DNA of 64,000 bases, from sequence record OR670491.1, one strand, 5' to 3'. A program made the position numbers and the translations under genes. Under the pieces are notes generated by a model that saw nothing but the letters and a program-made list of their open reading frames with translations, had not been told where the DNA came from and made no database searches. This document shows, one piece after another, positions 43,680 to 63,784 of this stretch. Numbering within the stretch: the first letter of the stretch is position 1; each line of letters begins with the position of its first letter.

Positions 43680-43921
43680 TGCATTACAAACATCTTCCAG
43701 AAATGGAATTCAGACGCATGTCCAAGTCAATCAGACAAAAATACATTGCAACACAAAGGTACAACCTAAAGTACAAGCACAATATTCATGACGAACGATT
43801 GCTGTACGTAGTAGGGACAGAGTATCAGGATAGGGTTGTTAATTCATATTTGTACGCCCTAAAAGAGTACATCCTATATCTTTGTAATAACAACAATAAC
43901 AGTACAAAGGACATAAAATGA
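43670..43921 (+). CDS. family B protein
   Basis: VGTEYQD. Confidence 0.75.
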   Translation: MEIMHYKHLPEMEFRRMSKSIRQKYIATQRYNLKYKHNIHDERLLYVVGTEYQDRVVNSYLYALKEYILYLCNNNNNSTKDIK

Positions 43922-44238
43922 AATTTAATATCCTAAGAGTATCAAAAAGAGCGATTTATGCATATGAGTTTAATTATGATCAATTTGATGTAGATATCAT
44001 TTTGTACAAGAACAGCCAAGGTGAAATGCTTTTTAAGTACCAAAATAGTGAAGCAGATAATATTCCTTTACCGGATTTAACCAAAATGCAAGAGGATGAA
44101 TTCTTTCAGCAGAGCTTAGTATATGATATTGATTTTTATAGTATAGATATTCTTTTAGCTTTACAGAAAAAGATGCACGAAATCTTTAATGATTTAGTCC
44201 AGGGTGATGATAGCACAAGGTTCGTATTCTATGTTTAG
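43918..44238 (+). CDS. family C (FQxS) protein, short type
   Basis: EDEFFQQSLVYD. Confidence 0.8.
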   Translation: MKFNILRVSKRAIYAYEFNYDQFDVDIILYKNSQGEMLFKYQNSEADNIPLPDLTKMQEDEFFQQSLVYDIDFYSIDILLALQKKMHEIFNDLVQGDDSTRFVFYV

Positions 44239-44434
44239 AAACATAGATCCCAATCAGTACGCAACAATGTACAGAGATTATTGGATGCAAAGTTCCAGTA
44301 CCAAGTCCCTTGCGGAATTTCGTATGATATATTTTCTTGGTACAGAGAATCAAGAAGAAACGATGCTGGACTATATTGAAGTACTAAAGGTTGAAGTACA
44401 AGATGAATACATATTAGGGGTTATGGAGCAGTGA
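44231..44434 (+). CDS. family B protein
   Basis: LGTENQE. Confidence 0.7.
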   Translation: MFRNIDPNQYATMYRDYWMQSSSTKSLAEFRMIYFLGTENQEETMLDYIEVLKVEVQDEYILGVMEQ

Positions 44435-44925
44435 AATCGAGATTCGTTTCAGAGTTCAGTACAGACACGGTGTACGCTAAGGATTTAGTACAGTTATTAA
44501 TTTCATTGCTCAAGGCTAAGGATAATTCAGAAGTTCAAGATTTGTGTAGTTCTTGTATCCGATATGCAGGTGGTAATTTGTATATTAATATAGATGGATT
44601 AGATCGTCCTATATATAAACAATCAAAATTCATCCAAAGTTGGACATACATTGATTTTGATAGTACATATTCGGCGTACACAAAAAGAAGTACAAAAACC
44701 TTTTTTACAATCCAGGGTAAAACGTATAATTTATTAAAAGAGCCATTAACAGAAGAAATGTATTTCCAGATGCAATGCTTAGGATTAAGTACAGAAGCGT
44801 TAAATGCTTATGTGCTTATTGATGCTATGGATTATTTAGATTTAGATAAGTACGTTCCAGACGGATGGAGAATGTCTTTACCTTCGTTATTTGCAGTGTA
44901 CAATACAATACATGGGGAACCTTAA
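44431..44925 (+). CDS. family C protein
   Basis: EEMYFQMQCL. Confidence 0.7.
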   Translation: MKSRFVSEFSTDTVYAKDLVQLLISLLKAKDNSEVQDLCSSCIRYAGGNLYINIDGLDRPIYKQSKFIQSWTYIDFDSTYSAYTKRSTKTFFTIQGKTYNLLKEPLTEEMYFQMQCLGLSTEALNAYVLIDAMDYLDLDKYVPDGWRMSLPSLFAVYNTIHGEP

Positions 44926-45436
44926 AGTGAATTTTAATGTAATTGATGTTCCTGAATTAGCAAAGAAGATTCAAACAATCCTGTACATAGGTAGTTCAAT
45001 ACGAAGTACAGGTGATTTCATCAGGACAGATAAAGTAAGAATGCAAGGTATGCGTTCATCATATGATGTTAAAGGTATGTGTACATTTGATATGGTCTAT
45101 ACAAAATACGGAAAGGAAAAGAATGCAGTATGTTTATTATCGTTTCCACCGAACCCTATAGCACCGAGAAATCCTAACAATACATTATGGTACGAGCAAG
45201 GTGCAGATACAGTAGAGTTCAAGGGTGTATTTTATGATGTAGAAGATATTCCAGCAACAGAAGAAGGAGCATTCCAGTACAGCTTATTATATCCAGATGA
45301 TGTAATATTTTATAAGAAGTTATTTTGGGAGTTAAACAATTTACCTCATTACACCCCTAATTTTTCAATAGATCTGGAGTGCATTGATACCGTATACGAA
45401 AGTTTAATGGAGTTCATTAGTTATGAAGTACAGTAA
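44912..45436 (+). CDS. family C protein
   Basis: EEGAFQYSLLY. Confidence 0.75.
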   Translation: MGNLKVNFNVIDVPELAKKIQTILYIGSSIRSTGDFIRTDKVRMQGMRSSYDVKGMCTFDMVYTKYGKEKNAVCLLSFPPNPIAPRNPNNTLWYEQGADTVEFKGVFYDVEDIPATEEGAFQYSLLYPDDVIFYKKLFWELNNLPHYTPNFSIDLECIDTVYESLMEFISYEVQ

Positions 45437-46004
45437 CCCAGAAGAGACAGTATTTGAGTACACATATGAAAATGCTGTAGAGCTTTGTACAAAATTAAAA
45501 GAAGTCCTTCAAATTTACAATTCCATTGTAAATGACCCAAAGAATAAAGATAAAAATGTAATCCAATTAAATGCATTTTGTTCCATAAACATAGCAAAAG
45601 ACCATTCAGAATTACAGGTCCGTAAAACACAAGATAACGAGGACAAATTCAGATTCATCAGGAATTATCCAATATCAGATGTATTATCATATCTTAGTTT
45701 TCCACCTGGTCCTTGTTTGAGTAAAGAAGATACGGATTCATTTTGGTATAATAGTACATTCCAGTACATGGGTATTAATAACAAGGGTTCAGATGCAACG
45801 GACAGGATTGAAGTGAATCAAAGTCCTAAAAGTGCAGAGGAATTCTTTCAGTACAGTACCCTTATGCATCCAAGAACAATTTTTTATTCATGCGTTTTAG
45901 ATGCTTTGAAGAGTTCAGGTTTAGATTTACCGCATTTACGTTTCAACCCACAGAGCATTCCTAGTGTGTGGGAAATGTTAAAGAACGAGCCGCCTGTGTC
46001 GTAA
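45423..46004 (+). CDS. family C protein
   Basis: EEFFQYSTLM. Confidence 0.8.
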   Translation: MKYSNPEETVFEYTYENAVELCTKLKEVLQIYNSIVNDPKNKDKNVIQLNAFCSINIAKDHSELQVRKTQDNEDKFRFIRNYPISDVLSYLSFPPGPCLSKEDTDSFWYNSTFQYMGINNKGSDATDRIEVNQSPKSAEEFFQYSTLMHPRTIFYSCVLDALKSSGLDLPHLRFNPQSIPSVWEMLKNEPPVS

Positions 46005-46020
46005 GATACGGGCTTTTTTT
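45992..46020 (+). terminator. intrinsic terminator
   Basis: GCCTGTGTC-GTAA-GATACGGGC + T7. Confidence 0.8.
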
Positions 46021-46023
46021 GTA

Positions 46024-46052
46024 TTGACAAAAGCAAAAGTACCAAGTACAAT
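46024..46052 (+). promoter_or_regulatory. sigma70-type promoter
   Basis: TTGACA-17-TACAAT. Confidence 0.8.
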
Positions 46053-46080: not shown

Positions 46081-46647
46081 ATGCAACCAGTACAACCAGT
46101 ACAACCAGTACCTAAAGTGCCTAAAGTGCATCTAGTAGCCGATTTCGAAGTACCACAAACGTTCGAAGAGTGCAATGCGTACATCGACAAGGTGCTTTGT
46201 ATTTTCAAGGCATTCATTGAAGATGACATTCCATCCTTTGATTACGAACATCCCAGCCAAGGGTACGCAAACATGTACACAAGGAATAACATGAGTGGTA
46301 TTATTCCTCACATCACGAGTACAACGTTTTGGTACACAGATAGTTCAAAGAAATCAAAAGATTTCCTTGTACGCGATTTGAATTTAAACGAACCTTCATC
46401 AGTACCTATGCTGTTTGAGCCTATTCAATCCAAAGAAGAGTATTTTCAGTACAGCACCTTGTATACAGCATTTGAGTTATTTTGTATTCAGATGTACGCA
46501 AGAACAAATGCTTATATTAAAGATAATCCAATCAATTTCAAAAGTGCCAAGATTGTCCATCCTGTATTTGCTGATTTATATGATTCAGTGTATTCAGGTA
46601 AAAAGCCAAAGTACACCACAACAGCGTATAGAGCGTTTCGTCCTTAA
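46081..46647 (+). CDS. family C protein
   Basis: EEYFQYSTLY; N-terminal QPV/PKV micro-repeats. Confidence 0.8.
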   Translation: MQPVQPVQPVPKVPKVHLVADFEVPQTFEECNAYIDKVLCIFKAFIEDDIPSFDYEHPSQGYANMYTRNNMSGIIPHITSTTFWYTDSSKKSKDFLVRDLNLNEPSSVPMLFEPIQSKEEYFQYSTLYTAFELFCIQMYARTNAYIKDNPINFKSAKIVHPVFADLYDSVYSGKKPKYTTTAYRAFRP

Positions 46648-47268: not shown

Positions 47269-47501
47269 TGATTTTATTCAATACAGGTCCGTGTTCCTTA
47301 GAAGTGATGTTTTCAAGAAATCGTTTATGGAATCAAAAATTCAGGGACGATACGTTGTTTCACAGGATGGTACAAACCTTCGAAAACGAGAAAGAAGAAG
47401 AATACATACACAGAATCATGTACATAGCAGTCCTCAGTACACCTGAATATTACGAGCGTTTGAGAGCGTTCAATTCCACAATACCAAAGGAGCCTAAGTG
47501 A
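47268..47501 (+). CDS. hypothetical protein
   Basis: TAATG overlap. Confidence 0.55.
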   Translation: MILFNTGPCSLEVMFSRNRLWNQKFRDDTLFHRMVQTFENEKEEEYIHRIMYIAVLSTPEYYERLRAFNSTIPKEPK

Positions 47502-47899
47502 CAACCATGAAACCAGTACCGTTAAGATATCAATTTTGTGCTTACGCAGTGCAAATGTACAGTTCAGAAGGTATATGTCAATACGAGTTTGATATTGAGT
47601 CACAGGAGACGAATGAAGAGGTGTACACGGTACGTTACCTTTACGGGAAGTACACCTTCGCTATCAAAGACAAGCACAGAAACATATCCCCTGTTCCTAA
47701 TTTTGTACACGAACCGGAGTTGGAGTTCCAGTACAGCACCTTAAGAGATGACATTCCTGTGCACAAGAAGATGCAGGATGTGCTGATAAAGTTCGTAGAA
47801 TGTGTTATGGCGGTTGACAATTACCCGAATATCCTGTACATTACCTTTGATAGTTACGAAATCTTAGAAGATATGTTCGAGGGATGGGAATTATGTTAA
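47498..47899 (+). CDS. family C protein, short type
   Basis: ELEFQYSTLRD. Confidence 0.75.
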   Translation: MTTMKPVPLRYQFCAYAVQMYSSEGICQYEFDIESQETNEEVYTVRYLYGKYTFAIKDKHRNISPVPNFVHEPELEFQYSTLRDDIPVHKKMQDVLIKFVECVMAVDNYPNILYITFDSYEILEDMFEGWELC

Positions 47900-48690: not shown

Positions 48691-49035
48691 ATGGATTTTG
48701 ATTATTCGATTTACAGTATAAAGTACCATGATTCTTTTGAATTGTATTGTAATCTTGTAAAGGGTGATAGCAAGCACGATTGTGAGCAATTCCTGCGATA
48801 CGATGGGAAACAATTTCATTTCTATGATTACTGTACTGGAGATAAAGAAGAAGTACCAGATTATACGGGGCTGGATGATGCAGAACTATTTCAGGCTAGA
48901 CTTGTATTTGATTCGAGATTAGTTTGCAGTATTGAAGAGATGATTCCTTTACAACAGGAATTAAAAGAACATTCCGAAAAGAAAGTCCAGTACGGATATG
49001 ATCATCGTTATTACTTTAATCTAGAGGATAAGTAA
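48691..49035 (+). CDS. family C protein, short type
   Basis: ELFQARLVFD; ATG 48691 behind GGAG. Confidence 0.75.
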   Translation: MDFDYSIYSIKYHDSFELYCNLVKGDSKHDCEQFLRYDGKQFHFYDYCTGDKEEVPDYTGLDDAELFQARLVFDSRLVCSIEEMIPLQQELKEHSEKKVQYGYDHRYYFNLEDK

Positions 49036-49511
49036 TGAGTTTAGAAAGTGCACTGGAATTAGGTCGAAGGATAGTTCCTATTATTAATTTCTACCAAAAG
49101 AATTTATATAAGCTAGGATACTTCAATGATGAAATCCTGACTCCAGAAGAACTGGAGTTGGGATACATGTGTATGTTAGCCTTTGGTCAGTATCATACTA
49201 GTGGTGATTGTGATATGAACCTTAGTGGTGGATATCTTGATTTCGAAAGGAATAGTGCACTCCAATTCGTAGACAGAAATGGTTCAGTACAACGTATTGA
49301 ACCGGAAGAGTTTAAAGAATTTAGTACTATGACAGAGGATATGTATTTCCAGTTAAGTACTCTTTACAGTTCAGAAGCACTTGATGCAATGATACTTTTT
49401 GATTACTTATATGGCAGTGATGTTCCTAACTTCGTGTATCTAAGTCTTACTCGCTTGGATATTCTGGAAGAATTATATGAACAGGATTTATTAAAACAGG
49501 TACATATGTAA
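49035..49511 (+). CDS. family C protein, long type
   Basis: EDMYFQLSTLYS. Confidence 0.8.
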   Translation: MSLESALELGRRIVPIINFYQKNLYKLGYFNDEILTPEELELGYMCMLAFGQYHTSGDCDMNLSGGYLDFERNSALQFVDRNGSVQRIEPEEFKEFSTMTEDMYFQLSTLYSSEALDAMILFDYLYGSDVPNFVYLSLTRLDILEELYEQDLLKQVHM

Positions 49512-49864
49512 TGGAATTTGAATTTGTAATATCGACACATAGTTTCAAGTTACAGCGTCAGTACTTTTGTAATTTAAACAAAGGTGATATGATACACGCA
49601 GGGAATGAATATCTTCATTACAGTAGTGGTAAATTTACATTTGTTAATTACGATAATTATCTTAATCCACATGAAGAGATGCTGGATTATACAGTACTAC
49701 CAGATGGTGAACTATTTCAGCAGTCCCTGGTATTTGATAAGAAGTACATTTGTTCTTTTGAGGATGTTTGTGCTTTGCAGAAGATCATAAAAGAATACGA
49801 CAAGAGTATTTCTGGGCGTGATATAATAATTAAGGAATATAAGTTCAACCTAGAGGATATGTAA
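49511..49864 (+). CDS. family C protein, short type
   Basis: GELFQQSLVFD. Confidence 0.8.
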   Translation: MEFEFVISTHSFKLQRQYFCNLNKGDMIHAGNEYLHYSSGKFTFVNYDNYLNPHEEMLDYTVLPDGELFQQSLVFDKKYICSFEDVCALQKIIKEYDKSISGRDIIIKEYKFNLEDM

Positions 49865-50301
49865 TGAGTTTAGAAAGAGCATTAGAAATTGCTGAGTTGA
49901 TTGATTTGTGCAGAACTAAAATCAAAACTGACTGCCTCAATGGATATCTATACCAGGAAGGCAATTCATATTTCCGAAGTTTATTTGATGAAAGTTCTGA
50001 TAGTATTGAAATGTATGATGATAAGTTAGATACCAGATATACTGTTGAATGCGATGTTAGTTTAGAAGATAATTACATATTCTTTTGTAAGAACTCTAGT
50101 ATTGCATTAAGTTATAATGAGCTTCTCCCTTATTCAGTACTTGAAGGTAATTGGGGTAGTCCAGAATATTACTTCCAGCAAAGTACTATCTACAGTGAAG
50201 AAGTTCTTGATAAACTAGTCATTTTGTGGTACTTTAATAACACTAGTCCCAATAACTTCTACATGGACTTGGACATATTAGATGTAATGAAAGGGGGATA
50301 A
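49864..50301 (+). CDS. family C protein, long type
   Basis: EYYFQQSTIYS; FYMDLD. Confidence 0.8.
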   Translation: MSLERALEIAELIDLCRTKIKTDCLNGYLYQEGNSYFRSLFDESSDSIEMYDDKLDTRYTVECDVSLEDNYIFFCKNSSIALSYNELLPYSVLEGNWGSPEYYFQQSTIYSEEVLDKLVILWYFNNTSPNNFYMDLDILDVMKGG

Positions 50302-50303: not shown

Positions 50304-50783
50304 GTGTCATTTGAAAGTGCCTTTATGGAAGCCCAACGAATCCATGAGTACATGATTCGTATTATTAATGATGATAATCCAAATATAACAAAGTACTGTG
50401 ATGCATCATGGACTGAGTACTACCTATGTACACCAGCACAAAAAAATTACATGTTGGATTCAAATACTCGTATTCTACATTTATGCCCTGGTAGTAATCA
50501 CTTCTACTGTTGTCGTACAGCAGAGCACAGTACTATGGAGTTCAGTAGGAGTAGTCCTATTATTTTTTATAACTGGAATGTAGAGGGTTCTAACTATACT
50601 GACTGTACACACCAGATAGATGCAGAAGTACTGGATGAGCCGTGGGATTCTTCTGATTATTATTTTCAGATGAGCACTGTGTACGAAGAAGATGTACTTG
50701 ACACTTTAGTACTGATGTGGTACTTTAAGCACAGAACAGATTATCCAGATTTCTATCTGGAGTACTTCCACGACATAGGCTAA
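50304..50783 (+). CDS. family C protein, long type
   Basis: DYYFQMSTVYE. Confidence 0.8.
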   Translation: MSFESAFMEAQRIHEYMIRIINDDNPNITKYCDASWTEYYLCTPAQKNYMLDSNTRILHLCPGSNHFYCCRTAEHSTMEFSRSSPIIFYNWNVEGSNYTDCTHQIDAEVLDEPWDSSDYYFQMSTVYEEDVLDTLVLMWYFKHRTDYPDFYLEYFHDIG

Positions 50784-50792
50784 GAGGATTAT

Positions 50793-51341
50793 ATGGATTA
50801 CACATTTAATGGTTTAGAGTACAGGCACTGTATTGCAATGGCTAAAGTACTGGAGTACGTTGTTACCAGATTGCAATGCAATGAATTTCTTAAGCGAAAT
50901 ATCTTATATCTAAATTCCGATGGTTACTTGTGCCATATTAATGATTTTGTTGACTTTGGTTGGGGCGTTCGTATTGACAAAGATACCATATCAAGAGCCG
51001 GATGCAGGGGTGCAGTTCTTACGCACTGTATTTGTTTTTCTCCTGATAGTAGATCTGTTATTATCAATCACGACAGTCAAAAATATTTTCTGGGTCTGGA
51101 CAATGGAGATTTGGAAGCGTGGTTCTTCCAGAACATTTTAGTACTTGAACCTATGAAAGTACTATATATGGTAGTGTTTAATTATTTGTACAACATTAAA
51201 TGCATAGATTCATTTGATATAGAAATGAGTCTTATGCGTATTATCAATCAAATACCTGAACTCCAGCGTATTACAGAAGAACCGTACTTCAACGATTTCA
51301 CAGAATTATATCGTATGCACAGCTTTGAAGGAGATGAATAA
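50793..51341 (+). CDS. family C-like protein
   Basis: AWFFQNILVL. Confidence 0.7.
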   Translation: MDYTFNGLEYRHCIAMAKVLEYVVTRLQCNEFLKRNILYLNSDGYLCHINDFVDFGWGVRIDKDTISRAGCRGAVLTHCICFSPDSRSVIINHDSQKYFLGLDNGDLEAWFFQNILVLEPMKVLYMVVFNYLYNIKCIDSFDIEMSLMRIINQIPELQRITEEPYFNDFTELYRMHSFEGDE

Positions 51342-51823
51342 TGTCATTTAAAGGAGCACTTGAAAAAGCTAATACTATTTTCGAGTACTATAAACTATTT
51401 CGTAATGGTGACTTGGATGATCTTTTTCAATGCAGCGATTTTTCTAATTCATACTTTCATACCAATAGTGATGGTAAGACATGGATAGTATACAGTACTA
51501 GTGGATCACGTGAAACTATTGAGTACTGCTGCAATCCAGACAGGGATTATATCTCGTACTGTCATAATTCTGAATATATTAATCTTGAGTTATGGACACA
51601 TGATGACAGTACTTACATGAAGACAACTGTTGATGGTGATGAGTTAAATGCCATGTACCAAGATTGGTTATCAGAAGATTATTACTTCCAGCAAAGTACT
51701 TTGCACAAGGAAATGTATCTTGATGCTATGGTAGTTCTTTCTTATCTTCGTTCTAAGAATTTAAGTCCTTTTTATTTGAATTTAGGTTATCTTGAAGAAA
51801 TCAAGAAGTCAATGCAAGGGTAA
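51341..51823 (+). CDS. family C protein, long type
   Basis: EDYYFQQSTLH. Confidence 0.8.
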   Translation: MSFKGALEKANTIFEYYKLFRNGDLDDLFQCSDFSNSYFHTNSDGKTWIVYSTSGSRETIEYCCNPDRDYISYCHNSEYINLELWTHDDSTYMKTTVDGDELNAMYQDWLSEDYYFQQSTLHKEMYLDAMVVLSYLRSKNLSPFYLNLGYLEEIKKSMQG

Positions 51824-51826
51824 TCA

Positions 51827-52174
51827 ATGAAAACTGAAATAGATGTAACTAACTTTTCGTACCACGGTACACTGTATTGTATTTTTAAACTCAAGAACAA
51901 AGATGTATCAATTCGTGCTCTTTATAATATTTGTACTACCGAAACTGAATACGATTTGTACATAGTTAAAGATGAACGTGGTGAGCGTGGTAGGATTCCT
52001 AATTACGCTGAATGTTCATACAGGGATGAATATGAAGCTTTTATGTTCCAGGAATCATTAGTATGGGAGAAGGATGTTGATTTCTTCTTAGTAAAAGAAA
52101 TCCAAGAGTACTTCCAACGTAATCACGAAAAGTTTATAAATGATGATTCCAAATTTACTTTAACACTAGGATAA
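51827..52174 (+). CDS. family C protein, short type
   Basis: FMFQESLVWE. Confidence 0.8.
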   Translation: MKTEIDVTNFSYHGTLYCIFKLKNKDVSIRALYNICTTETEYDLYIVKDERGERGRIPNYAECSYRDEYEAFMFQESLVWEKDVDFFLVKEIQEYFQRNHEKFINDDSKFTLTLG

Positions 52175-52885: not shown

Positions 52886-52913
52886 TTGACACTTGGGAGT
52901 TTTGTGCTATAAT
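52886..52913 (+). promoter_or_regulatory. sigma70-type promoter
   Basis: TTGACA-16-TATAAT. Confidence 0.75.
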
Positions 52914-54238: not shown

Positions 54239-54444
54239 GTAAAATAAAGTACATCAATGATGATTACATTATGAAGAACGCTATTAAGTACTTCAGTAAT
54301 TCTGCCAATCAGGGTGACAATCTTAAGATGGTGGAGATTCGTGTACTCATATACTTAGGAACACAACACCAGGAAAAATTGATTGCAGAATATCTTGATT
54401 CACTAAAACGACATGTAGAGAAAATTTATTATGGAATACAATGA
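54235..54444 (+). CDS. family B protein (outlier)
   Basis: LGTQHQE. Confidence 0.7.
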   Translation: MSKIKYINDDYIMKNAIKYFSNSANQGDNLKMVEIRVLIYLGTQHQEKLIAEYLDSLKRHVEKIYYGIQ

Positions 54445-54931: not shown

Positions 54932-55460
54932 ATACAATTCGTTAATTGAAACTATTGAAAAGTCCAGACGTGCTCATACGTTAATGGTTAAGTACGATAT
55001 TAATAAGTATAAGAAATTTAGTATTCAAGAACTTGAACTCGGTGAAAATACAAGGAAATTTCTTTCTTATAGTGGTAGAATGTTTATCTCTCTTAATTTC
55101 TTTGAGAATCCAGATTTGGAATTGATGCGTTCTATGGTTACATCAATGGACGATAAAATACAAAGTATCTATTTCCGTAATGGCAAGAAGATGGAAATCC
55201 ATGTGTACTATCAGTGTGATGACCGTTTATCATATGATATTACAAACTATCCACAATTCAGTACTTCAGACGATGCAGCTTTATTCCAGTACAGTACTCT
55301 GTACAGTAATTTTGATTTCATGTGCTTGTACATAATCAATGCCCTACGAGAACTGGACTATAACAATTACAACATCAACTGCTCTGTAATGCAGGACGAT
55401 GGTTTCGATGAAGGTATTGATGAGTTACTTACATATCTAAATGAGTACATTAATGAATAA
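54918..55460 (+). CDS. family C protein
   Basis: ALFQYSTLYS. Confidence 0.8.
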   Translation: MIYSEYNSLIETIEKSRRAHTLMVKYDINKYKKFSIQELELGENTRKFLSYSGRMFISLNFFENPDLELMRSMVTSMDDKIQSIYFRNGKKMEIHVYYQCDDRLSYDITNYPQFSTSDDAALFQYSTLYSNFDFMCLYIINALRELDYNNYNINCSVMQDDGFDEGIDELLTYLNEYINE

Positions 55461-55513: not shown

Positions 55514-55882
55514 ATGAAACAGGTATTTCGTTATACGTATTACACTACAAAAAAGCAATTGGTTTCTTTATTTGGTTTCAAGACTTTGAAGACAAATGCA
55601 TATCAAAGGGTATTCATTGGCATTGATGATAATGGTTTCTTTCAATTACTGTCCAATGAAAGTGATAAGTCCTATACTATCCCTGACACTACTGTACTGG
55701 GAGAAGGTGAATTATTCCAGTTGAGTACTGTATGGGATGATTCAGAATATGCATGTAATTTTGAGAATTTTGTTCAGTACCAGAAAATATTACGAACTGA
55801 TTTTGAGAACTACCCAGTGAAAGTATTAAGTACTGGAAACGAACAATACAGACAAAAAGTGGTTGAACTTGATGCGTATTGA
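55514..55882 (+). CDS. family C protein, short type
   Basis: GELFQLSTVWD. Confidence 0.8.
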   Translation: MKQVFRYTYYTTKKQLVSLFGFKTLKTNAYQRVFIGIDDNGFFQLLSNESDKSYTIPDTTVLGEGELFQLSTVWDDSEYACNFENFVQYQKILRTDFENYPVKVLSTGNEQYRQKVVELDAY

Positions 55883-56405
55883 AACAATAAGAACACACAG
55901 TGCAGAAACATTCTTTGATATTTGGCTTGTCCAGGAGCTAATGACTATTGGTTCTATTCCTACGAAATTATTAAATTACACACATAACAATAGTAATTCT
56001 GTACCACACCAATCAATTACCGATAGTAGTGGTGTGGTGTACATGCGTAGTAGTACTAATATTAATAATATAAAAAGTGCATACAATAATTCATGTGGCT
56101 TCTTTACTTATAAATCCGATACTCACCCATCATTCAGTACTATATTACAGGGGAATGTAATTTATCTTGACATGTTGAAACCACAAGAGTATACTGACGA
56201 TGTAATTAATGAAATTAGTACTGCAACAGATCCGAATCTGGTAATTGCTTCTATGGTATTCTCTTACATGAGATACAGTGCTATGCCGTGTACGTGGGCT
56301 TCAGCACCTGATCTCAGGAGATATTTAAATTCACTCCTAGGCACAAACTTCAGAGAACATTTAAATGCACGACGATTTATACAAAATAAACTACAGATTG
56401 AGTAG
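55872..56405 (+). CDS. hypothetical protein
   Basis: long ORF in run; family C motif degenerate or absent. Confidence 0.65.
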   Translation: MRIETIRTHSAETFFDIWLVQELMTIGSIPTKLLNYTHNNSNSVPHQSITDSSGVVYMRSSTNINNIKSAYNNSCGFFTYKSDTHPSFSTILQGNVIYLDMLKPQEYTDDVINEISTATDPNLVIASMVFSYMRYSAMPCTWASAPDLRRYLNSLLGTNFREHLNARRFIQNKLQIE

Positions 56406-56718
56406 AAAAGAACTTATACTCAGGATTGGTTATGATGCACGTAAAAAATGTCACAATAATATCATGTACAACAGTACTGAACGTTTTCTTTTTTGTGTTG
56501 GATTTACAAGGTACTTCATTGATGACTTTACGGAGTTAGGTGAAGGGGAACTATTCCAGAACATGTGTGTTCTTCCTGATTACATTAATGTAGATATATA
56601 TGACTTAGTAAAGTATCAGAAAGCATTAAAGTACTTATACAATAACTATCCATGTACACCAGATCCTAAAACTATAGGTTATGAGGTTTATCACTTACCA
56701 GGAAATCTAATATGTTAG
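56365..56718 (+). CDS. family C protein, short type
   Basis: GELFQNMCVL. Confidence 0.7.
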   Translation: MHDDLYKINYRLSRKELILRIGYDARKKCHNNIMYNSTERFLFCVGFTRYFIDDFTELGEGELFQNMCVLPDYINVDIYDLVKYQKALKYLYNNYPCTPDPKTIGYEVYHLPGNLIC

Positions 56719-57296
56719 ATAAAGATAAAAAACTACTGTCCCCAAGAAATAATCATTTAAAATTAGATACATTAGAAGAAGCTATCCAATGCGGTAAACA
56801 GTTAGTTGAACTAATCAATGCAATTGAAAATGATGAAATACCACAGATTCAACGCTGTGAAGAAGAATTTGAGGGTGATGGCGATCCTTACTATTACAAT
56901 TTTAGAAAGGAAGATGCTAGAACATCTGAATACGAAAGTGCACTATATACAGTACAAGGTGATTACGACACAAGTGAATACGATCCATGTTTTCAGGGTG
57001 GATTCCTCAGTACTAGTTTAAAATCAGATATAATTGTAGTTGACTGGTATGTACACAGAGATGGTAGTTTAGAGGATAATAATGAACTTCGTCTCGATGC
57101 ATCAGGTATTGAATTTACTGAAGAGTCATTCTTCATGCACAGTACATTGTACTCTCAGTACTGCACTGGTGTTATGGTACTGGCGAAGTACTTAAACCAA
57201 GAACTCAAAAAACCTATCTATCTGGACTTAGATATGCTAGAACAAGCATACAAGTACCACCTTCAAGCCAAATCAAAAAAGGCATCTAAAAAATAG
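56712..57296 (+). CDS. family C protein, long type
   Basis: EESFFMHSTLYS; IYLDLD. Confidence 0.8.
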   Translation: MLDKDKKLLSPRNNHLKLDTLEEAIQCGKQLVELINAIENDEIPQIQRCEEEFEGDGDPYYYNFRKEDARTSEYESALYTVQGDYDTSEYDPCFQGGFLSTSLKSDIIVVDWYVHRDGSLEDNNELRLDASGIEFTEESFFMHSTLYSQYCTGVMVLAKYLNQELKKPIYLDLDMLEQAYKYHLQAKSKKASKK

Positions 57297-57326
57297 TTGA
57301 CCTTCCTCCTTCTCTTGTGATATAAT
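57297..57326 (+). promoter_or_regulatory. sigma70-type promoter
   Basis: TTGACC-18-TATAAT. Confidence 0.55.
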
Positions 57327-57360: not shown

Positions 57361-57834
57361 ATGAGCACTCATTTTCTTTGCACTTATCAATCAGCATTTG
57401 CTTTAGCTCAAAAAATCGAATTCCTTTACCATACATTCATTTCCTTCGAGGATGATGAACACATCCAAGTAGGTTCAGAAAGACTTGATTTCAAGGAAAG
57501 TCATAACCAAATTATATATAAAAAATGTTTGTTATTCAGTGTAAATGAAAATTCAGTGAATATCAGGACAAATATAGACCCTTATGTTTGTTATTCCCCA
57601 ACAATAAAGAGATATAAATTATCTACTGCAAGGGGTTATTCAAATGATTATGAAGCTGTTGACATTTTCAGTGAAGAAGATTACTTCATGAATTTGTGTT
57701 TGTTCCCTGAACTGGACGTATATAATCTTACTATCATTTCATACTTCAAGTTAAAGGGCATGGGTTCATTCTATATGGATCTGGATTGCGTTAATGAATT
57801 GTATGAGCATTTTTCTGGAGTACATAATGTATAA
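57361..57834 (+). CDS. family C protein, long type
   Basis: EEDYFMNLCLF; FYMDLD. Confidence 0.75.
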   Translation: MSTHFLCTYQSAFALAQKIEFLYHTFISFEDDEHIQVGSERLDFKESHNQIIYKKCLLFSVNENSVNIRTNIDPYVCYSPTIKRYKLSTARGYSNDYEAVDIFSEEDYFMNLCLFPELDVYNLTIISYFKLKGMGSFYMDLDCVNELYEHFSGVHNV

Positions 57835-58315
57835 GAATGTAATGATGACCGACTACGATTCAGTACTGAAATTTGCAGAAATCGTAACCAAAATACACTT
57901 TGAAGCTTACACTGATAATCCATTCGGTGGTTTATTTTATAAGAAATTCGACTCATACGAACGACCAATCCTCGCTGATCTAAATTATGTAAATGATGAG
58001 AATGCAATGGAACGATATTGTGAGTACTTCAAAGATAGTGATTTCAGTTTAAAAAGTGCATATATGTCATACGCACCTGGAACTGATATATCCATTAATG
58101 ATGGCTATGATAAAGTCCTATACAAATCTGAAGATTTACCAAAGGATTATAGTGAGGATTCATATTTTCAGTACTTATGTATACATGATATCAATACTGT
58201 GAATGTATTATTCTTCTATACTATTCTTCGTAAGAAATATCAGTTGACTAAATGTTTCTTTTTGGATTTTGAATTAATGTCCGATGCAGTACTGGAGTAT
58301 CTCAATGCCGATTGA
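57827..58315 (+). CDS. family C protein, long type
   Basis: EDSYFQYLCIHD. Confidence 0.75.
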   Translation: MYKNVMMTDYDSVLKFAEIVTKIHFEAYTDNPFGGLFYKKFDSYERPILADLNYVNDENAMERYCEYFKDSDFSLKSAYMSYAPGTDISINDGYDKVLYKSEDLPKDYSEDSYFQYLCIHDINTVNVLFFYTILRKKYQLTKCFFLDFELMSDAVLEYLNAD

Positions 58316-58646
58316 AATCGAGTTCATGGTTGATTCGGATTATGATTGTTTTATTATCCAGACTAAGTACAAAGATGACTTGTACTTAGTTTATATTCAC
58401 GATAATTCACAGTTCTATATGCATAGAAAAGTATCCAAAACATACACACAAGAAAAGAAAATCAAAAACTATACCAAACTAAGTACAGAAGAACTATTCC
58501 AAATGAGTTGTTCTGACGACTATGATGTGCATTTGATAAAAGAATTACAATTACCGCTTCTTAAATTCCAAAAAGAATGTAATCCTGTATTTGCAAAGCA
58601 CTTTGGTATCCCGTGGGATTATACAACATTTATGTACGAAGGATAA
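58305..58646 (+). CDS. family C protein, short type
   Basis: EELFQMSCSDD. Confidence 0.75.
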   Translation: MPIEIEFMVDSDYDCFIIQTKYKDDLYLVYIHDNSQFYMHRKVSKTYTQEKKIKNYTKLSTEELFQMSCSDDYDVHLIKELQLPLLKFQKECNPVFAKHFGIPWDYTTFMYEG

Positions 58647-58649: not shown

Positions 58650-59045
58650 ATGAAAACAATGCATGTAATTTTACGTGTTGAAACTGCTTTACGTGTTGAT
58701 ACTTCTCTTAAATATGCCAATAATTCATATGATTCAGTAGTATATGAACGTTGGGTTAAGCTTGACAAGACGAACACTTTACGCTATATTTCTAATACAA
58801 ATAAATTCGATGTGAACTCCGAGAACGTTCCTAGGCTCGCTCACATGAGTTCTGAAGAGGTATTTCAGTACTCCTTAGTGCACAAGCATAGTGCTGATTT
58901 GAAGGTTCTGAAGGCCGTTCAGGAGGCTCTATTGGAGAATAACAGGACTCGTTACGTTACAATTGAGGTGGATGCACCGGATTATATGTTAGATGATGAC
59001 GAATTCTATGAGAAACATTTCCCTAAGAAACAATGGAGGGATTAA
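58650..59045 (+). CDS. family C protein, short type
   Basis: EEVFQYSLVH. Confidence 0.8.
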   Translation: MKTMHVILRVETALRVDTSLKYANNSYDSVVYERWVKLDKTNTLRYISNTNKFDVNSENVPRLAHMSSEEVFQYSLVHKHSADLKVLKAVQEALLENNRTRYVTIEVDAPDYMLDDDEFYEKHFPKKQWRD

Positions 59046-59513
59046 ATGCGAAAGTACAATGATGCTATGCGTTTCGCACGTGATAGTCTAAATGCACTCA
59101 CGTACCTTGTACTGAACGAAGATAAACTACCAAAAGAGTTTGACGTTCGTTATCCAGCCCGTAACGTTATGGTTACATGGCACGGTGCTTATAGTGTTAG
59201 TGTTTCGTCGGCAGGAGATCCATCACCTTATGTAGCTTCCATATTTGAAAAAGCCAGAACAAACTATGTGTACTTCGCTAAGAACACTAATACTGTTAAT
59301 TTCATCGCTAAAGACCGTAACTTGTGCAAGATGCAAGTACTGACAGAATTAAGTCCAGAGAATTTCTTTCAACAGAGTCTTCTTTATCCAGAAGATGCAG
59401 TACTTGCATTGTTTATGATTTCGTACTATAATTTGAACAGTACTATCGGTTCGTTCTCCTACGAGGTTGCTGACATGAAGCACTTCATTAAAACACTGAA
59501 GGGATTAAAATGA
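59046..59513 (+). CDS. family C protein
   Basis: ENFFQQSLLY. Confidence 0.8.
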   Translation: MRKYNDAMRFARDSLNALTYLVLNEDKLPKEFDVRYPARNVMVTWHGAYSVSVSSAGDPSPYVASIFEKARTNYVYFAKNTNTVNFIAKDRNLCKMQVLTELSPENFFQQSLLYPEDAVLALFMISYYNLNSTIGSFSYEVADMKHFIKTLKGLK

Positions 59514-60055
59514 ATATTGAAGGTATAGATAAAATTGTCCAAATGTACAAGTTCTTATTATATGCTCGTAAGAATATGGAAGCACATAAAATTTGGTTTG
59601 ATGCACCTGATGATGAATATATGTTGATTAGAAATATCGCTGCGGGTACTGATTTTTATGGAAAGGGTGATGGACTAATATTTACAATTCGCCCTGAAGT
59701 TCAGGGTGATCATAACCGACGAAACCCCAATAGTGCTTCACATTACAAGCACATACTACGCGATGATAATTTCTTCATTAGCTCAAGTGAAAGTGATTTA
59801 TGTGATGATATTTTCATTAGTTATTTGGATGAACCTGTTATAATCAAAATGCCAAGTACTGAAGAAGAGGAATTTCAGTTCTCATTAATTCATGATGACA
59901 AGACTATGTTTATATATTATCTACAGAAAGCATTGAAAGGTATTATACCAAATGATGTATGGGTTGGTGGTTATTATGATAGAATCATAAACTACGATTT
60001 CAGTACTGTACTAAGTCTCATTAACACTGATAAGATGAAATATGGAAAATATTAA
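59510..60055 (+). CDS. family C protein
   Basis: EEEFQFSLIHD. Confidence 0.8.
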   Translation: MNIEGIDKIVQMYKFLLYARKNMEAHKIWFDAPDDEYMLIRNIAAGTDFYGKGDGLIFTIRPEVQGDHNRRNPNSASHYKHILRDDNFFISSSESDLCDDIFISYLDEPVIIKMPSTEEEEFQFSLIHDDKTMFIYYLQKALKGIIPNDVWVGGYYDRIINYDFSTVLSLINTDKMKYGKY

Positions 60056-60560
60056 AACACCTAAGCATATTATTAAAGTACTTGAATTCATGTTAACTAA
60101 AGTACAAAAAACAATAGAGAATGGTATTAAAAAATCTATATACGTTAATGGAAAAGATTCTCTACTTATTATCCATCCTGATGGTCAATGCACTTTGCAG
60201 TACAATACTGACCGTAAAATCACTATGTTAAATGAAAACCTTCAGTACGTAAGTGATAGTGTTTCAAGGATTATCATCAGGGGTGATACATTCTTCCTAT
60301 CTTCACCGAACTCAATGAAGTTGTATCCAGTCAACGATGTTATTGAATATGAGGATGCAGAAAAATATGATTTGACTGGTTTCAAGACCGAAGAAGGTCG
60401 CTTCATGTTAAGTACACTTCTTGATCAAGATGCAATGAACATCCTGGAAATTGATGCTGCTATCGGTCACTTAATCCCAGCTAATCAATACATTAGCTTA
60501 AGAACCAATGCCATGTACAGCGAAGCAATGCGTGCTATAAGACGTGATTTCAACATATAA
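60042..60560 (+). CDS. family C protein
   Basis: EEGRFMLSTLLD. Confidence 0.75.
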   Translation: MENIKTPKHIIKVLEFMLTKVQKTIENGIKKSIYVNGKDSLLIIHPDGQCTLQYNTDRKITMLNENLQYVSDSVSRIIIRGDTFFLSSPNSMKLYPVNDVIEYEDAEKYDLTGFKTEEGRFMLSTLLDQDAMNILEIDAAIGHLIPANQYISLRTNAMYSEAMRAIRRDFNI

Positions 60561-60579
60561 GACCCTTATGGGTCTTTTT
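60559..60579 (+). terminator. intrinsic terminator
   Basis: AAGACCC-TTAT-GGGTCTT + T tract. Confidence 0.75.
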
Positions 60580-60590
60580 GTGTTTAGGGC

Positions 60591-60619
60591 TTTACAGAGC
60601 GTTCTAGACGTGTTATAAT
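60591..60619 (+). promoter_or_regulatory. sigma70-type promoter
   Basis: TTTACA-17-TATAAT. Confidence 0.65.
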
Positions 60620-60649: not shown

Positions 60650-61189
60650 ATGGAAAAAATACTCATAGTTCATGACATTATAAAAGAGATGGCAACATTA
60701 CATGAAAGCGATAAAGTTGTTTCTAATCCCACTTCAATAACAAACTGCTTTTTAATGAGAAAGATGCACTACGGTGTGAACTTACTACTCAAGGCAGAAT
60801 CGGCAACGTACTTCACCTTTTCAGTGTATAGTAGTTCATTCCAAATAGATGATAGTACTGAGACAAAAATCCTGATAGATGGCTCTAACAAATGGGTGTT
60901 TATTGAAAGTGCTGAAAACTGTATCCCGTGCTTAGAGGCTGACTACGCAGATATTAAACTTGATCTAATTGAAAGTACTGACATTGAGAGTACATACTTT
61001 CAGATGTGTACTTTACATGATACTTCTATTGTAGATGCATTAGTACTTGAATTCTTACTTCGTGATTGGATTAAGAATAGTTCACTAGGAAGATTCTACG
61101 TTGGTTATGTCAATAAAATGCGTGATTTAACTGTTCAAGAGTTGAAAGAACTTCTGGACGCATTAAGGAAATTAAATGCTGAATCGTGA
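60650..61189 (+). CDS. family C protein
   Basis: ESTYFQMCTLHD. Confidence 0.8.
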   Translation: MEKILIVHDIIKEMATLHESDKVVSNPTSITNCFLMRKMHYGVNLLLKAESATYFTFSVYSSSFQIDDSTETKILIDGSNKWVFIESAENCIPCLEADYADIKLDLIESTDIESTYFQMCTLHDTSIVDALVLEFLLRDWIKNSSLGRFYVGYVNKMRDLTVQELKELLDALRKLNAES

Positions 61190-61745
61190 TATACTCTGTA
61201 AAATTAGTTCTGCACTTCATAAAGTTGGTACTAAGTACGATATCCCTGGTGAGAAAGATAAGTGGATTGATATTGAGGATGTGTACCGTATCGTAATCAG
61301 TCCTAGTACTGAATACACGTATAACATCTGTAGTATCAATACCATTAACTACAACCCAAGAATGGGTCTTCAACACATCATCATTGCATCCTATGTAGGT
61401 ACTAGCAGAGTTTATACTGATAACATTGGATACTATAGTCCGCATATGTTTTCTATACGTTGTGCAAGGGACAACCAAATAGCAGCGGTTGAATTGTATA
61501 ATGAGACTGAGTACGCGAATGAAGTGATGGATATCCCAGTTGATCTTCAAAACTTAAAAGAGCGAGAATCTTCATGGTTCCAGTACTCTTTACTTGACAA
61601 CTACAAGATTTATGATACTATGTGCTTAATGTACGATGTGAACAAGATTTTACCTAAAGGGGAAATCTTAATGTACGAGGCATTTGTTAATCTCAAAGAT
61701 GAAGAACTCCAAAAAATTTACGAGGAATTAATCAAACATGTCTAA
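61176..61745 (+). CDS. family C protein
   Basis: ESSWFQYSLLD. Confidence 0.8.
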   Translation: MLNRDILCKISSALHKVGTKYDIPGEKDKWIDIEDVYRIVISPSTEYTYNICSINTINYNPRMGLQHIIIASYVGTSRVYTDNIGYYSPHMFSIRCARDNQIAAVELYNETEYANEVMDIPVDLQNLKERESSWFQYSLLDNYKIYDTMCLMYDVNKILPKGEILMYEAFVNLKDEELQKIYEELIKHV

Positions 61746-62316
61746 CATCATTGATGCTATTCAAAATCCAAATCACAAAATTCTGTGCAATATCATTGCT
61801 GATATGAAGCAGCATTTGATTAAAATGAAAAACACAGATACACCTGTGAACTTCAACAAACAATTACAGCACGGGTTGAACTTGAGCTTAAAGTTGAAGC
61901 AGAAGATGACATATGATAATTACATCTTGAACGCAGGTGGTCCGCGTGCTATTGTATTTGTCAATAACGGTTTCAGTACTGATGCGGTGCATGATATCAA
62001 TGTTGACCATTACATCAATAATAGAAATTTCGTTGTTATTGATGCACCATGTGATAAAGTTGTACTTACTACGGATACAGGATACCGTAAAGTTAAAATT
62101 CTTCGCAGTACGGATGACGTACAAGGTAAAGTCTTTCAGATGATTACCGTTGAAGATACCGACAGTATTGATGCATTATTACTGGTATCAGCTTTACACG
62201 AACTAATTATTGGTAGTGCAATGAAATTGATTATTGATATTGATACCGTCAATAAATTATCAATTGACTCTCTACAGAAAGTACACGAAACTGTACAGGG
62301 ATTACTTAATGAATAA
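61738..62316 (+). CDS. family C protein
   Basis: KVFQMITVED. Confidence 0.7.
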   Translation: MSNIIDAIQNPNHKILCNIIADMKQHLIKMKNTDTPVNFNKQLQHGLNLSLKLKQKMTYDNYILNAGGPRAIVFVNNGFSTDAVHDINVDHYINNRNFVVIDAPCDKVVLTTDTGYRKVKILRSTDDVQGKVFQMITVEDTDSIDALLLVSALHELIIGSAMKLIIDIDTVNKLSIDSLQKVHETVQGLLNE

Positions 62317-62857
62317 TTTTCAAAATATGTACGACATGTGTAAGATTATGTCAAATTTCAGTACTAAGATTAAATCGGCTCCAGTAGCGGAAGTTCACAT
62401 GTCCGAACGCTACTACACGTTCCGAGTATCCAGTACTGGTGACAGTATTCGACTGTTCTTAAATGACCGACAGCAATTGTTTGATGTAGTCATTGTAGAC
62501 CATACTACAAAGGGAAAATATGCATACAATATGTATGCAAAAAATCGTTGGTTAGTAATTCGTAATACAATGCAACGATTACGTGCAGCTACAGATATAA
62601 ACAGTACTGGTGATGATTACGATATTACTAACATTTTAGATGAATCTGTTTTTAATTTTGAAATAGATTTATCTGTTGATGATCCATTCCTGCGTGACCT
62701 TTACAAATTACACGGGTGCGTTGTTCGTGGTACACAAGATATCAAAGCTGTGTCAATTGAGGTATCCAGAATTCATGAACACAATGTGAACCTGGAATCA
62801 TTGATTGATAAGATGAATACCAATTTCTTCTTTTGGAAGTGTAAGGATGAACTATGA
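62309..62857 (+). CDS. hypothetical protein (possibly degenerate family C)
   Basis: ATG 62309 overlaps previous stop. Confidence 0.7.
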   Translation: MNNFQNMYDMCKIMSNFSTKIKSAPVAEVHMSERYYTFRVSSTGDSIRLFLNDRQQLFDVVIVDHTTKGKYAYNMYAKNRWLVIRNTMQRLRAATDINSTGDDYDITNILDESVFNFEIDLSVDDPFLRDLYKLHGCVVRGTQDIKAVSIEVSRIHEHNVNLESLIDKMNTNFFFWKCKDEL

Positions 62858-63306
62858 CACGCGATGAGTGTATCCTATTATGTAAAGTTGTAGAGAAGAT
62901 CTTAAGTGATCCTTCTCTTGAAAATAGTAAAGTACTGAAAAATAAAACACGCAGGTCGTGGACTGATATTGCACTTGTAAGTGATGATATCAATGTTGGA
63001 ACTTTGTGGCCTTCGAGAACATATACACTAACAAGTGCAATACACGAAGAAAGTGTAGATTATGTAGGTGAGAAAACTTTCATCTACGGTAGTACTACAC
63101 CAGTAATGCATATCATTGATTTAGTTGATATGGATGACTTTGATTCGTTATATCTTCAGTACTCTTCGACATATAATACTGAATTAATTTATCAATTGGT
63201 TCTTATTTCGAGGATTAGTTATTTGATTAAAAATAACAATGATTATTCTTCGCTTTCACTTACGTTCGAATTACTACCTTATGCAGAGGAATTCTTAAAT
63301 GAGTAA
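62854..63306 (+). CDS. family C-like protein
   Basis: DSLYLQYSSTY. Confidence 0.75.
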   Translation: MTRDECILLCKVVEKILSDPSLENSKVLKNKTRRSWTDIALVSDDINVGTLWPSRTYTLTSAIHEESVDYVGEKTFIYGSTTPVMHIIDLVDMDDFDSLYLQYSSTYNTELIYQLVLISRISYLIKNNNDYSSLSLTFELLPYAEEFLNE

Positions 63307-63784
63307 TATCAGTGCACAAGATTACGTTAAGATTTACAATTTCATGAATAGCTTCTTTGGTCCTGAAACTAAAGAAGTACAACTAACTAAGAACTTACAG
63401 TTAGGTGTATACAGTAATACTTATGTAGGTATTAAGAATACATCAAGTACCACTGAATTTAATACAGATATGTTTCGTATTATCCGTAATACACATAATC
63501 GTGAAATTAGTACATTAACACCTAATACAATGATAGCTGAACCTCCGACGAAAAATATCAATGTTATCACATTCAATTCAGATAATGTCGTTGAGATTCC
63601 AGAATTTACTTCATTTGATGAATTACAGTTTCAGTTGAGTACTCTATATAAAAATGAAAGTATCCTGACATTCTTATCATATCTTAATAGTATTAATAAT
63701 AATTATGTGGTTTATTTTGGTTCAATCCAGTCTATTAGTATTACACAGGAATTAATTGATTACATTGATAGTCTGGAGGAATAA
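63299..63784 (+). CDS. family C protein
   Basis: ELQFQLSTLY. Confidence 0.8.
   Translation: MSNISAQDYVKIYNFMNSFFGPETKEVQLTKNLQLGVYSNTYVGIKNTSSTTEFNTDMFRIIRNTHNREISTLTPNTMIAEPPTKNINVITFNSDNVVEIPEFTSFDELQFQLSTLYKNESILTFLSYLNSINNNYVVYFGSIQSISITQELIDYIDSLEE

Follow-up and report, generated by a model that had tools for sequence, protein, structure and literature searches.

Tandem, lineage-specific expansion of small accessory proteins is a familiar feature of large viruses. The multigene families MGF360/505 of African swine fever virus (ASFV) and the ankyrin families of poxviruses are terminal families of non-structural proteins, variable between strains and arranged in tandem near the genome end or the terminal repeats. 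Phage SPO1 carries host-takeover modules formed by small early gene clusters at its terminal redundancy, and phage T4 has highly variable small internal proteins that share an N-terminal capsid-targeting peptide. Poly-immunity arrays of SUKH/Imm-type immunity proteins were reportedly described by Zhang, Iyer and Aravind in 2011; their members are small acidic alpha+beta proteins, encoded in tandem and diversified, which act by neutralising a variety of protein targets. Bacillus phage G encodes a ~35-copy zinc-ribbon family, a lineage-specific expansion in a jumbo phage (PMC7824862), and ~10% of the proteins of phage RaK2 were noted, in generic terms, to be paralogues (PMC3622015). Here we analyse a tandem array of small paralogues, named Family C, in the 64-kb stretch of DNA (hereafter the window) that closes sequence record OR670491.1 of Escherichia phage vB_EcoM_JNE01 (JNE01).

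JNE01 is an Asteriusvirus whose record has 355,583 bp; the window corresponds to its last 64 kb with identical letters. Window positions 43918-63784 are record positions 335501-355367, where the deposited annotation labels each coding sequence (CDS) 'hypothetical protein'. A first-pass annotation of this DNA had proposed that most genes of the segment encode proteins with a common motif. The ~40 genes of Family C amount to ~6% of the DNA of a genome. We found no paper describing the family; it is not singled out in the papers on RaK2, phAPEC6, fEgEco12 and Sharanji, in a jumbo-phage survey or in a 2026 review.

Family membership

Family C is one real family, far beyond what chance would produce. 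BLASTP alone (1e-3) joins only subgroups of 8, 5, 3, 2 and 2 members, so profiles are needed to bring these together. An iterative hidden Markov model (HMM) seeded with the largest subgroup (8 open reading frames, ORFs) and run with an inclusion threshold of E<=1e-3 converges on 33 ORFs of the window, and no reversed or shuffled decoy out of ~2,150 passes. When the profile is widened with the start of the record and one relative, it collects 35 ORFs in the window, 5 across the record break and 42 in phage vB_Ec-M-J, again without decoys. An HMM search was the check that the first-pass annotation had proposed, and it recovers a single family.

The initial count was about 38 proteins, with the motif in nearly every gene from 43.9 kb onwards. 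Thirty-five of them are robust and three are borderline only. The robust members include 34 of the ~45 genes of 43918-63784, about three quarters, while the 35th is ORF 1221-1874, the outlier first placed at 1233 (Table 1). The other supposed outlier, at 14733, does not stand: ORF 14733-15407 is similar to the family around the motif only (hhalign probability 29%), like the two further borderline ORFs 53684-54238 (33%) and 46657-47268 (8%). Profile search and hhalign led us to turn down 14733-15407 as a member, together with 55863-56405, 62234-62857 and 52572-52883.

Record OR670491.1 begins and ends at an artificial break: the closely related Turkey5, 96.7% identical in this region, has a circular record that continues across it. 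One Family C gene is split by the break into window 63784-64000 and record 1-365; its orthologue in Turkey5 is an intact protein of 193 amino acids (aa), and the HMM match lies on record 63-365. The deposit also leaves out the family member at 56365-56718, showing a 306-nucleotide 'gap' there.

A constant carboxyl-terminal module and a variable amino-terminal part

Family C proteins are ~105-215 aa long, acidic (median isoelectric point 4.9 vs 6.7), soluble and free of hydrophobic segments. Their carboxyl-terminal module of ~55 aa begins with an acidic run and the near-invariant motif (T/S)EExxFQxS(T/L)(L/V)(Y/H/W), after which come helices and one strand. The strongest columns in an alignment of 130 sequences are T/S-E-E-x-x-F(128/130)-Q(122/130)-x-S-T/L-L/V/I-Y. 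Beyond the motif, hydrophobic positions are conserved too, and the long-type group also conserves an amino-terminal helix and aromatic positions in the strands. Along the protein, the motif falls at 0.55-0.80 of the length, in the carboxyl-terminal half as first described, and the acidic patch reported ahead of it is borne out by a D/E content of 29% vs 14% (p 9e-12). A helix is indeed predicted after the motif; the qualifier 'amphipathic' given to it is not supported since its hydrophobic moment equals that of shuffled sequences.

Each member was cut eight residues ahead of the invariant F to compare the two parts. The C-parts alone recover 78 of 80 members and the N-parts alone 20 of 79, with zero decoys in both searches. 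The 145 N-parts of four phages fall into 86 BLASTP clusters, and profiles of the four largest clusters have no mutual similarity, no more than reversed controls. The architecture of a variable amino-terminal and a constant carboxyl-terminal part, as originally described, is thus found again, but to call the N-domains unrelated is too strong and unproven: the full-length profile, two structural models and whole-length Foldseek alignments (see below) suggest one fold with a hypervariable half, which is at least as likely as a set of unrelated N-domains. The same description distinguished a short and a long subtype that often alternate. Both subtypes exist and adjoin each other several times, but their order along the array, with 13 switches, is within chance (P=0.75).

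Selection at the protein level and the AGTACT excess

The family is shaped by protein-level selection. Its pooled ratio of nonsynonymous to synonymous substitution rates (dN/dS, omega) against Turkey5 is 0.32, with omega of 0.42 in the N-part and 0.21 in the C-module (bootstrap 95% confidence interval of the difference 0.06-0.34). Codons of the motif vary as well: F is encoded by TTC in 18 cases and TTT in 18, with CTT (L) in one further member; Q is encoded by CAG in 30 and CAA in 4; S uses both the AGY and the TCN codon families, with AGT in 13 of 26. The variation at F and S and the pooled dN/dS agree with the protein-level selection claimed in the first-pass annotation.

The five genes of 50304-52570 form a hot spot of divergence between JNE01 and Turkey5. 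Three of them have 78-88% amino acid identity and the other two 94-96%, and omega is ~0.7-1.6 in four of the five; elsewhere omega is mostly 0.05-0.6 and identity mostly 91-100%. This pattern suggests patchy recombination or diversifying selection.

A strong sequence bias is found at the DNA level. The palindrome AGTACT is ~14-fold over-represented in the window (307 copies vs ~21.5 expected), CAGTACTG is present in 61 copies vs ~0.7 expected, GTAC is the top 4-mer and AGTAC/GTACT are the top 5-mers by Markov z-score. AGTAC is also frequent in the DNA of the motif, as was noticed at the outset (20 of 37). The motif could then be an artefact, the AGTAC(T) bias of the genome read in one frame, an explanation that we reject as scarcely credible. 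The other 17 motif DNAs have no AGTAC, and the AGTACT excess is even along the window and hits all three codon phases of the family genes (40/48/30). Moreover, the most conserved residue, F (TTY), is outside AGTAC, Ser comes from both of its codon families, homology spans ~55 to 140 residues without a single decoy passing, and omega is 0.2 to 0.4. The excess may bias codon choice in the motif and cannot create it; the palindrome may serve as a site of protein binding or of modification.

Predicted structure and search for known relatives

AlphaFold2 models were built for two closely related long-type members, encoded by 51341-51823 and by 49864-50301 (deep alignment). Both models consist of one compact alpha+beta domain with an amino-terminal helix and an antiparallel meander of four strands in the first and seven in the second. 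The meander is followed by a short helix bearing FQ, with a predicted local distance difference test score (pLDDT) of ~95, then by one long helix, one strand and a final helix. In Foldseek, predicted structures of divergent family proteins from 121Q, SP27 and RaK2 align with the first model from end to end, with template modelling (TM) scores of 0.5-0.7 and 14-24% identity. Structure prediction, the second check proposed with the original description, yields a compact domain in two long-type members, while a common fold for all N-parts goes beyond these models.

The predicted fold is apparently new. The two models used as queries gave no significant fold match in the PDB (Foldseek E>=1.2; VIA-align Z<=3.7), the Swiss-Prot AFDB or the ESM Atlas. 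The only significant match among AFDB clusters is an unnamed 147-aa protein (E 1.6e-4), probably a family member. Weak top matches to CyaY/frataxin, p32/MAM33, START and LspA were dismissed as relatives (TM<=0.25 or Z<=3.7). Sequence-profile search of the PDB found no solved relative. Pfam was scanned with 10 and with 26 members, up to E=10, and yielded no fitting family and none that recurs, nor any F-box, SOCS-box, PRANC, BTB, SspB-like or other docking domain, and NCBIfam and PADLOC have no matching family for the members. We gave no weight to the likeness of ExxYFQ to a tobacco etch virus (TEV)-type protease site, nor to the loose likeness of QxSLVF to a beta-clamp-binding motif.

PHROGs distributes members over at least seven separate 'unknown function' families (phrog_9317, 12674, 19795, 34017, 15629, 13866 and 34359), with E-values of 2e-13 to 8e-39 for eight of the nine members tested; the product of 61738-62316 matched none. 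These entries are the family's own, split into several unrelated-looking groups without motif, architecture or function, and are joined here as one family.

Distribution and evolution

An exhaustive profile search of 1.84 billion representatives returned only 118 proteins, all of 93-213 aa apart from a 4098-aa match (P0078) that is spurious, the motif being absent. The named members of 10 sampled clusters are all from ~350-kb Asteriusvirus-type contigs or RaK2-like Klebsiella phages. A single-sequence search of a 5.8-billion-protein set found near-identical copies only, and a scan of IMG/VR with the back-translated motif found RaK2 and one 109-kb contig only. Judged from these searches, the family is restricted to RaK2-like jumbo phages of enterobacteria. 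There are at least 28 members in RaK2, at least 38 in phAPEC6, 42 in vB_Ec-M-J and ~40 in JNE01; on an uncultivated 109-kb contig, a stretch of 9.4 kb holds at least 11.

Gene order is collinear between arrays: reciprocal best hits give a rank correlation of 0.91 for JNE01 with vB_Ec-M-J or phAPEC6, 1.0 for vB_Ec-M-J with phAPEC6, and 0.3-0.67 against RaK2. Positional orthologues of JNE01 and vB_Ec-M-J are nevertheless only ~33-35% identical, and collinearity combined with such low identity points to an old expansion. At the DNA level, the arrays of other Asteriusviruses match that of JNE01 over 1-2% of its length with 76-79% identity, conservation being found only in Turkey5. Sequence comparison indicates that the paralogues are individually kept, diverge fast mostly in their N-part and are under short-term purifying selection. 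The products of the terminal-repeat genes are 96.7% identical in protein sequence between JNE01 and vB_Ec-M-J, against ~80% for neighbouring enzymes and ~33-40% for the arrays, so that the repeat looks recently exchanged or unusually constrained.

Genomic context and expression

Relatives with mapped ends have direct terminal repeats of ~21 kb. The repeat of vB_Ec-M-J is 1-21525 and that of fEgEco12, confirmed by PhageTerm and restriction digests, has 20,993 bp (PMC13070987). They correspond to window positions ~17750-39270, which gives the order, from the left end, of repeat, array of ~75-aa genes (39061-43921) and Family C array, all on the + strand. The Family C array begins ~5 kb beyond the equivalent of the 21-kb repeat and extends from 43918 to the window end and over the first ~4.5 kb of the record. 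Overlapping or abutting genes at 32 of its 43 junctions indicate long operons.

The region equivalent to the repeat has 105 sigma70-like sites vs 67±8 expected, and 14 perfect TTGACA-16/17-TATAAT promoters, all on the + strand. The Family C array, outside the repeat, has ~4-6 strong promoter-like sites only. The strongest are in its few gaps, at 46024, 52886 (12/12), 57297 and 60591, two of them directly after terminator-like hairpins. Relatives annotate DksA-like, kinase, acetyltransferase and Spackle genes in the terminal repeat, a content typical of an immediate-early region. The relative PA5oct needs host RNA polymerase and uses sigma70-like promoters, and its repeat genes are early and transcribed from one strand (PMC7318152). 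By analogy, the Family C array is most likely transcribed early by the host sigma70 RNA polymerase.

Two other elements were observed in the repeat equivalent. Window 18001-38000 also holds ~11 TTGCAA-16-TATAAT sites, all on the + strand. A 28-nucleotide hairpin is repeated at 27453, 31471, 34746 and 37496; it contains the -35-like hexamer TTGACT and so forms terminator-promoter cassettes.

The Family C array of phAPEC6 is gp404c-gp461c, and none of the gp348-gp548 products is among the 62 virion proteins of this phage (PMC7247149, Table 1). Family C proteins are absent from the virions of phAPEC6, from which we infer their absence in the other phages.

Putative function of Family C

We favour the hypothesis, with a probability of about 0.42, that Family C is an early-expressed repertoire of host-directed, target-specific binding proteins. 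The genes, grouped in long operons with translational coupling that directly follow the promoter-dense immediate-early repeat, would be transcribed early by the host sigma70 RNA polymerase. The variable half would give each paralogue its own host target and the constant module would be the shared structural and functional core. In host takeover or counter-defence, each protein would mainly bind its target stoichiometrically or neutralise it. Early expression, the binding function and the host targets are what we infer for these proteins, and several points weigh against this hypothesis. Early timing is suggested by promoter-like sites and analogy, and such sites show no overall excess in the Family C array (72 vs 98 expected). 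Collinear orthologues across genera would fit 40 fixed, distinct jobs better than the gain-and-loss turnover of counter-defence. The conserved polar residues D89, T/S99, E100, E101, Q105 and S107 exceed structural need, a hint of a shared ligand or partner. Finally, a common fold of the N-parts would be an extension of the models of two closely related members.

The first-pass annotation had seen in Family C an adaptor library, conceptually like F-box proteins, in which the FQ module docks all paralogues on one hub and the variable half recruits different targets. Such a library would be a phage counterpart of F-box or PRANC receptors. Candidate hubs are a phage ClpP-based protease, a host AAA+ unfoldase, the sliding clamp and RNA polymerase. 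The opposition of constant module and hypervariable half on which this idea was built is quantitatively real. The near-invariant F and Q are flanked by conserved acidic or polar residues and, by their periodicity, would lie on one helix face; some 40 distinct paralogues kept collinear also fit many fixed targets. At record 28365-29060, outside the window and among non-structural genes, lies a gene for a genuine ClpP proteolytic subunit (PF00574, E 5e-41); ClpP alone is not known to offer adaptors a substrate-docking surface. However, the Pfam scans detected none of the docking domains named above, and the models place the motif within a well-packed helix (pLDDT ~95) rather than in an exposed peptide. 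The conserved T/S-E-E could merely cap this helix. An adaptor library, which would be a special case of the binder repertoire, is in our opinion rather unlikely.

Another role for the constant module would be to hetero-oligomerise the paralogues, for example short with long, as subunits of one intracellular, non-virion assembly. The order of all paralogues fixed across genera, operons with the translational coupling typical of complexes and the repeated adjacency of short and long types go in this direction, but alternation is within chance, an identity of ~33% between positional orthologues is unusual for co-assembling subunits and the copy number varies between phages from 28 to 42, which makes one assembly improbable. 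A family of small enzymes, whose D/E/E/Q/S cluster would be an active or metal site and whose variable half would set substrate choice, is very improbable. It would explain the polar residues listed above, conserved across 130 sequences, and the lack of a known fold leaves room for a new catalytic one; yet the proteins resemble no enzyme family, some members under purifying selection have M in place of Q or L in place of F, and a set of forty paralogous enzymes as small as 105-215 aa would be out of the ordinary.

Hundreds of jumbo-phage genes have no known function, and here ~6% of a 355-kb genome is one coherent family. Some 40 'hypothetical proteins' per genome become one testable system. 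This holds equally for all RaK2-like phages infecting E. coli, Klebsiella and relatives, and the use of several of these phages in therapy is being considered. Should the members neutralise or redirect host proteins, they would provide a ready panel of natural binders against bacterial targets. If the hypothesis of target-specific binding proteins is true, they are also a possible source of new counter-defence or host-takeover mechanisms. A shared hub would make Family C the first adaptor library of such kind in a phage, with programmable early degradation or rewiring of dozens of host factors, built on a new fold.

Map of the array and neighbouring gene families

Table 1. Family C members, one borderline ORF and promoter or terminator-like elements of the array. 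Coordinates are those of the window; motif letters follow the protein length; HMM values are E-values; AF2, AlphaFold2; pTM, predicted TM score.
Feature	Coordinates	Strand	Evidence
Outlying member, 217 aa, ELMFQYSLLY	1221..1874	+	HMM 3.9e-16; phrog_34359
Member, short type, 106 aa, DEFFQQSLVY	43918..44238	+	HMM 1.5e-14
Member, 164 aa, EMYFQMQCLG	44431..44925	+	HMM 2.9e-19
Member, 169 aa (deposited start), EGAFQYSLLY	44927..45436	+	HMM 3.2e-29; deposited CDS
Member, 193 aa, EEFFQYSTLM	45423..46004	+	HMM 1.5e-26
Terminator-like hairpin (45992-46013), then sigma70-like promoter (46024-46052, 11/12), in intergenic gap	45992..46052	+	
Member, 188 aa, EEYFQYSTLY	46081..46647	+	HMM 3.2e-22
Member, 133 aa, ELEFQYSTLR	47498..47899	+	HMM 1.2e-21
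Member, short type, 114 aa (deposited start), AELFQARLVF	48691..49035	+	BLASTP cluster with short types; widened profile; alignment
Member, long type, 158 aa, DMYFQLSTLY	49035..49511	+	HMM 1.5e-24; phrog_9317
Member, short type, 117 aa, GELFQQSLVF	49511..49864	+	HMM 1.6e-17; phrog_15629
Member, long type, 145 aa, EYYFQQSTIY, modelled protein 2	49864..50301	+	HMM 3e-26; AF2 pLDDT 84.3, pTM 0.83
Member, long type, 159 aa, DYYFQMSTVY	50304..50783	+	HMM 8.5e-26
Member, 182 aa, AWFFQNILVL	50793..51341	+	HMM 8.8e-24
Member, long type, 160 aa, DYYFQQSTLH, modelled protein 1	51341..51823	+	HMM 5.4e-27; AF2 pLDDT 76.7, pTM 0.75
Member, short type, 115 aa, AFMFQESLVW	51827..52174	+	Widened profile E<=1e-3; alignment
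Member, compact long type, 130 aa, EGFFQLSLLY	52178..52570	+	HMM 6.1e-21
Perfect sigma70 consensus promoter (12/12, extended -10 TG), just upstream of deposited start 52930	52886..52913	+	
Member, short type, 103 aa, EELFQFSLVW	52930..53241	+	HMM 2.1e-17
Member, long type, 156 aa, EGFFQLETMY	53242..53712	+	HMM 1.3e-25
Borderline ORF, 184 aa, similar around motif only	53684..54238	+	HMM 0.029; hhalign 33% over 30 columns
Member, 166 aa, DSYFQYSFVY	54431..54931	+	HMM 9.3e-24
Member, 180 aa, AALFQYSTLY	54918..55460	+	HMM 3.1e-20
Member, short type, 122 aa, GELFQLSTVW	55514..55882	+	HMM 5e-13
Member, short type, 117 aa, GELFQNMCVL, unannotated in deposit	56365..56718	+	HMM 3.3e-15
Member, long type, 194 aa, ESFFMHSTLY (Q to M)	56712..57296	+	HMM 7.9e-25
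Sigma70-like promoter (11/12, TG) in 64-nucleotide intergenic gap	57297..57326	+	
Member, long type, 157 aa, EDYFMNLCLF	57361..57834	+	HMM 3.6e-22
Member, 162 aa (deposited start), DSYFQYLCIH	57827..58315	+	HMM 6.1e-20
Member, short type, 113 aa, EELFQMSCSD	58305..58646	+	HMM 8.9e-18
Member, short type, 131 aa, EEVFQYSLVH	58650..59045	+	HMM 8.1e-18
Member, long type, 155 aa, ENFFQQSLLY	59046..59513	+	HMM 4.3e-27; phrog_34017
Member, 181 aa, EEEFQFSLIH	59510..60055	+	HMM 6.3e-26
Member, 172 aa, EGRFMLSTLL	60042..60560	+	HMM 4.1e-22
Terminator-like hairpin (60559-60576), then sigma70-like promoter (60591-60619, 11/12, TG), 89-nucleotide gap	60559..60619	+	
Member, 179 aa, STYFQMCTLH	60650..61189	+	HMM 2.7e-23
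Member, 189 aa, SSWFQYSLLD	61176..61745	+	HMM 6.3e-22
Member, 192 aa, GKVFQMITVE	61738..62316	+	HMM 2.2e-24
Member, 150 aa, SLYLQYSSTY (F to L)	62854..63306	+	HMM 3.5e-23
Member, 161 aa, ELQFQLSTLY	63299..63784	+	HMM 5.5e-19
Further member, first 72 codons, cut by record end; motif SEEWYFQNSLLH at record start	63784..64000	+	

Other paralogue families were observed in the window. The second one has 19 tandem, BLASTP-linked genes of ~75-85 aa on the + strand, at 39061-44434 and 54235-54444, two copies being inside the Family C array. It has no Pfam match, and its positional orthologues are ~40% identical to those of vB_Ec-M-J. The third has 11 genes of ~60-70 aa, also on the + strand (14348-17164 and 1876-2085); the one member tested gave no Pfam match. 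On the - strand, positions 2114-13382 hold ten tandem paralogues of ~360-450 aa with RCC1-like beta-propeller repeats. Judged by their size, number of copies and place on the map, they appear to be the counterparts of the 'DNA condensation proteins' of phAPEC6 (gp003-010, gp549, gp551), which are present in its virion (PMC7247149).

Comparison with known systems

Family C is new as a family: neither its motif nor its modular evolution, apparent fold or scale has been described. Like the zinc-ribbon family of phage G, it is a large tandem expansion of small proteins of unknown function, with a different fold and sequence. F-box/PRANC receptors also combine a constant module with a hypervariable part in many paralogues per genome, but Family C has no F-box Pfam match or known Skp1-like hub, and its module is carboxyl-terminal, inside a single compact predicted domain. 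The common element is likewise internal or carboxyl-terminal (0.55-0.80 of the length) when compared to the targeting peptide of T4 internal proteins, and gp404c-gp461c of phAPEC6 are not in the virion. A layout like that of the SPO1 module, with small early genes each behind a strong host-type promoter, is seen in the neighbouring repeat with its 14 perfect promoters; the Family C array itself is not part of the repeat, and few promoters belong to it. It shares tandem diversified paralogues (35-42 per phage) with the SUKH/Imm arrays, though it has no SUKH/Imm Pfam match and no immunity-protein fold match (E>=1.2, Z<=3.7), and no adjacent toxin genes were recognised. As to the terminal families of ASFV and poxviruses, no sequence or fold relation to Family C was found and the host of Family C is bacterial; it is nonetheless, like them, arranged in tandem, adjacent to the terminal repeat, variable between strains and, in phAPEC6, absent from the virion proteome.

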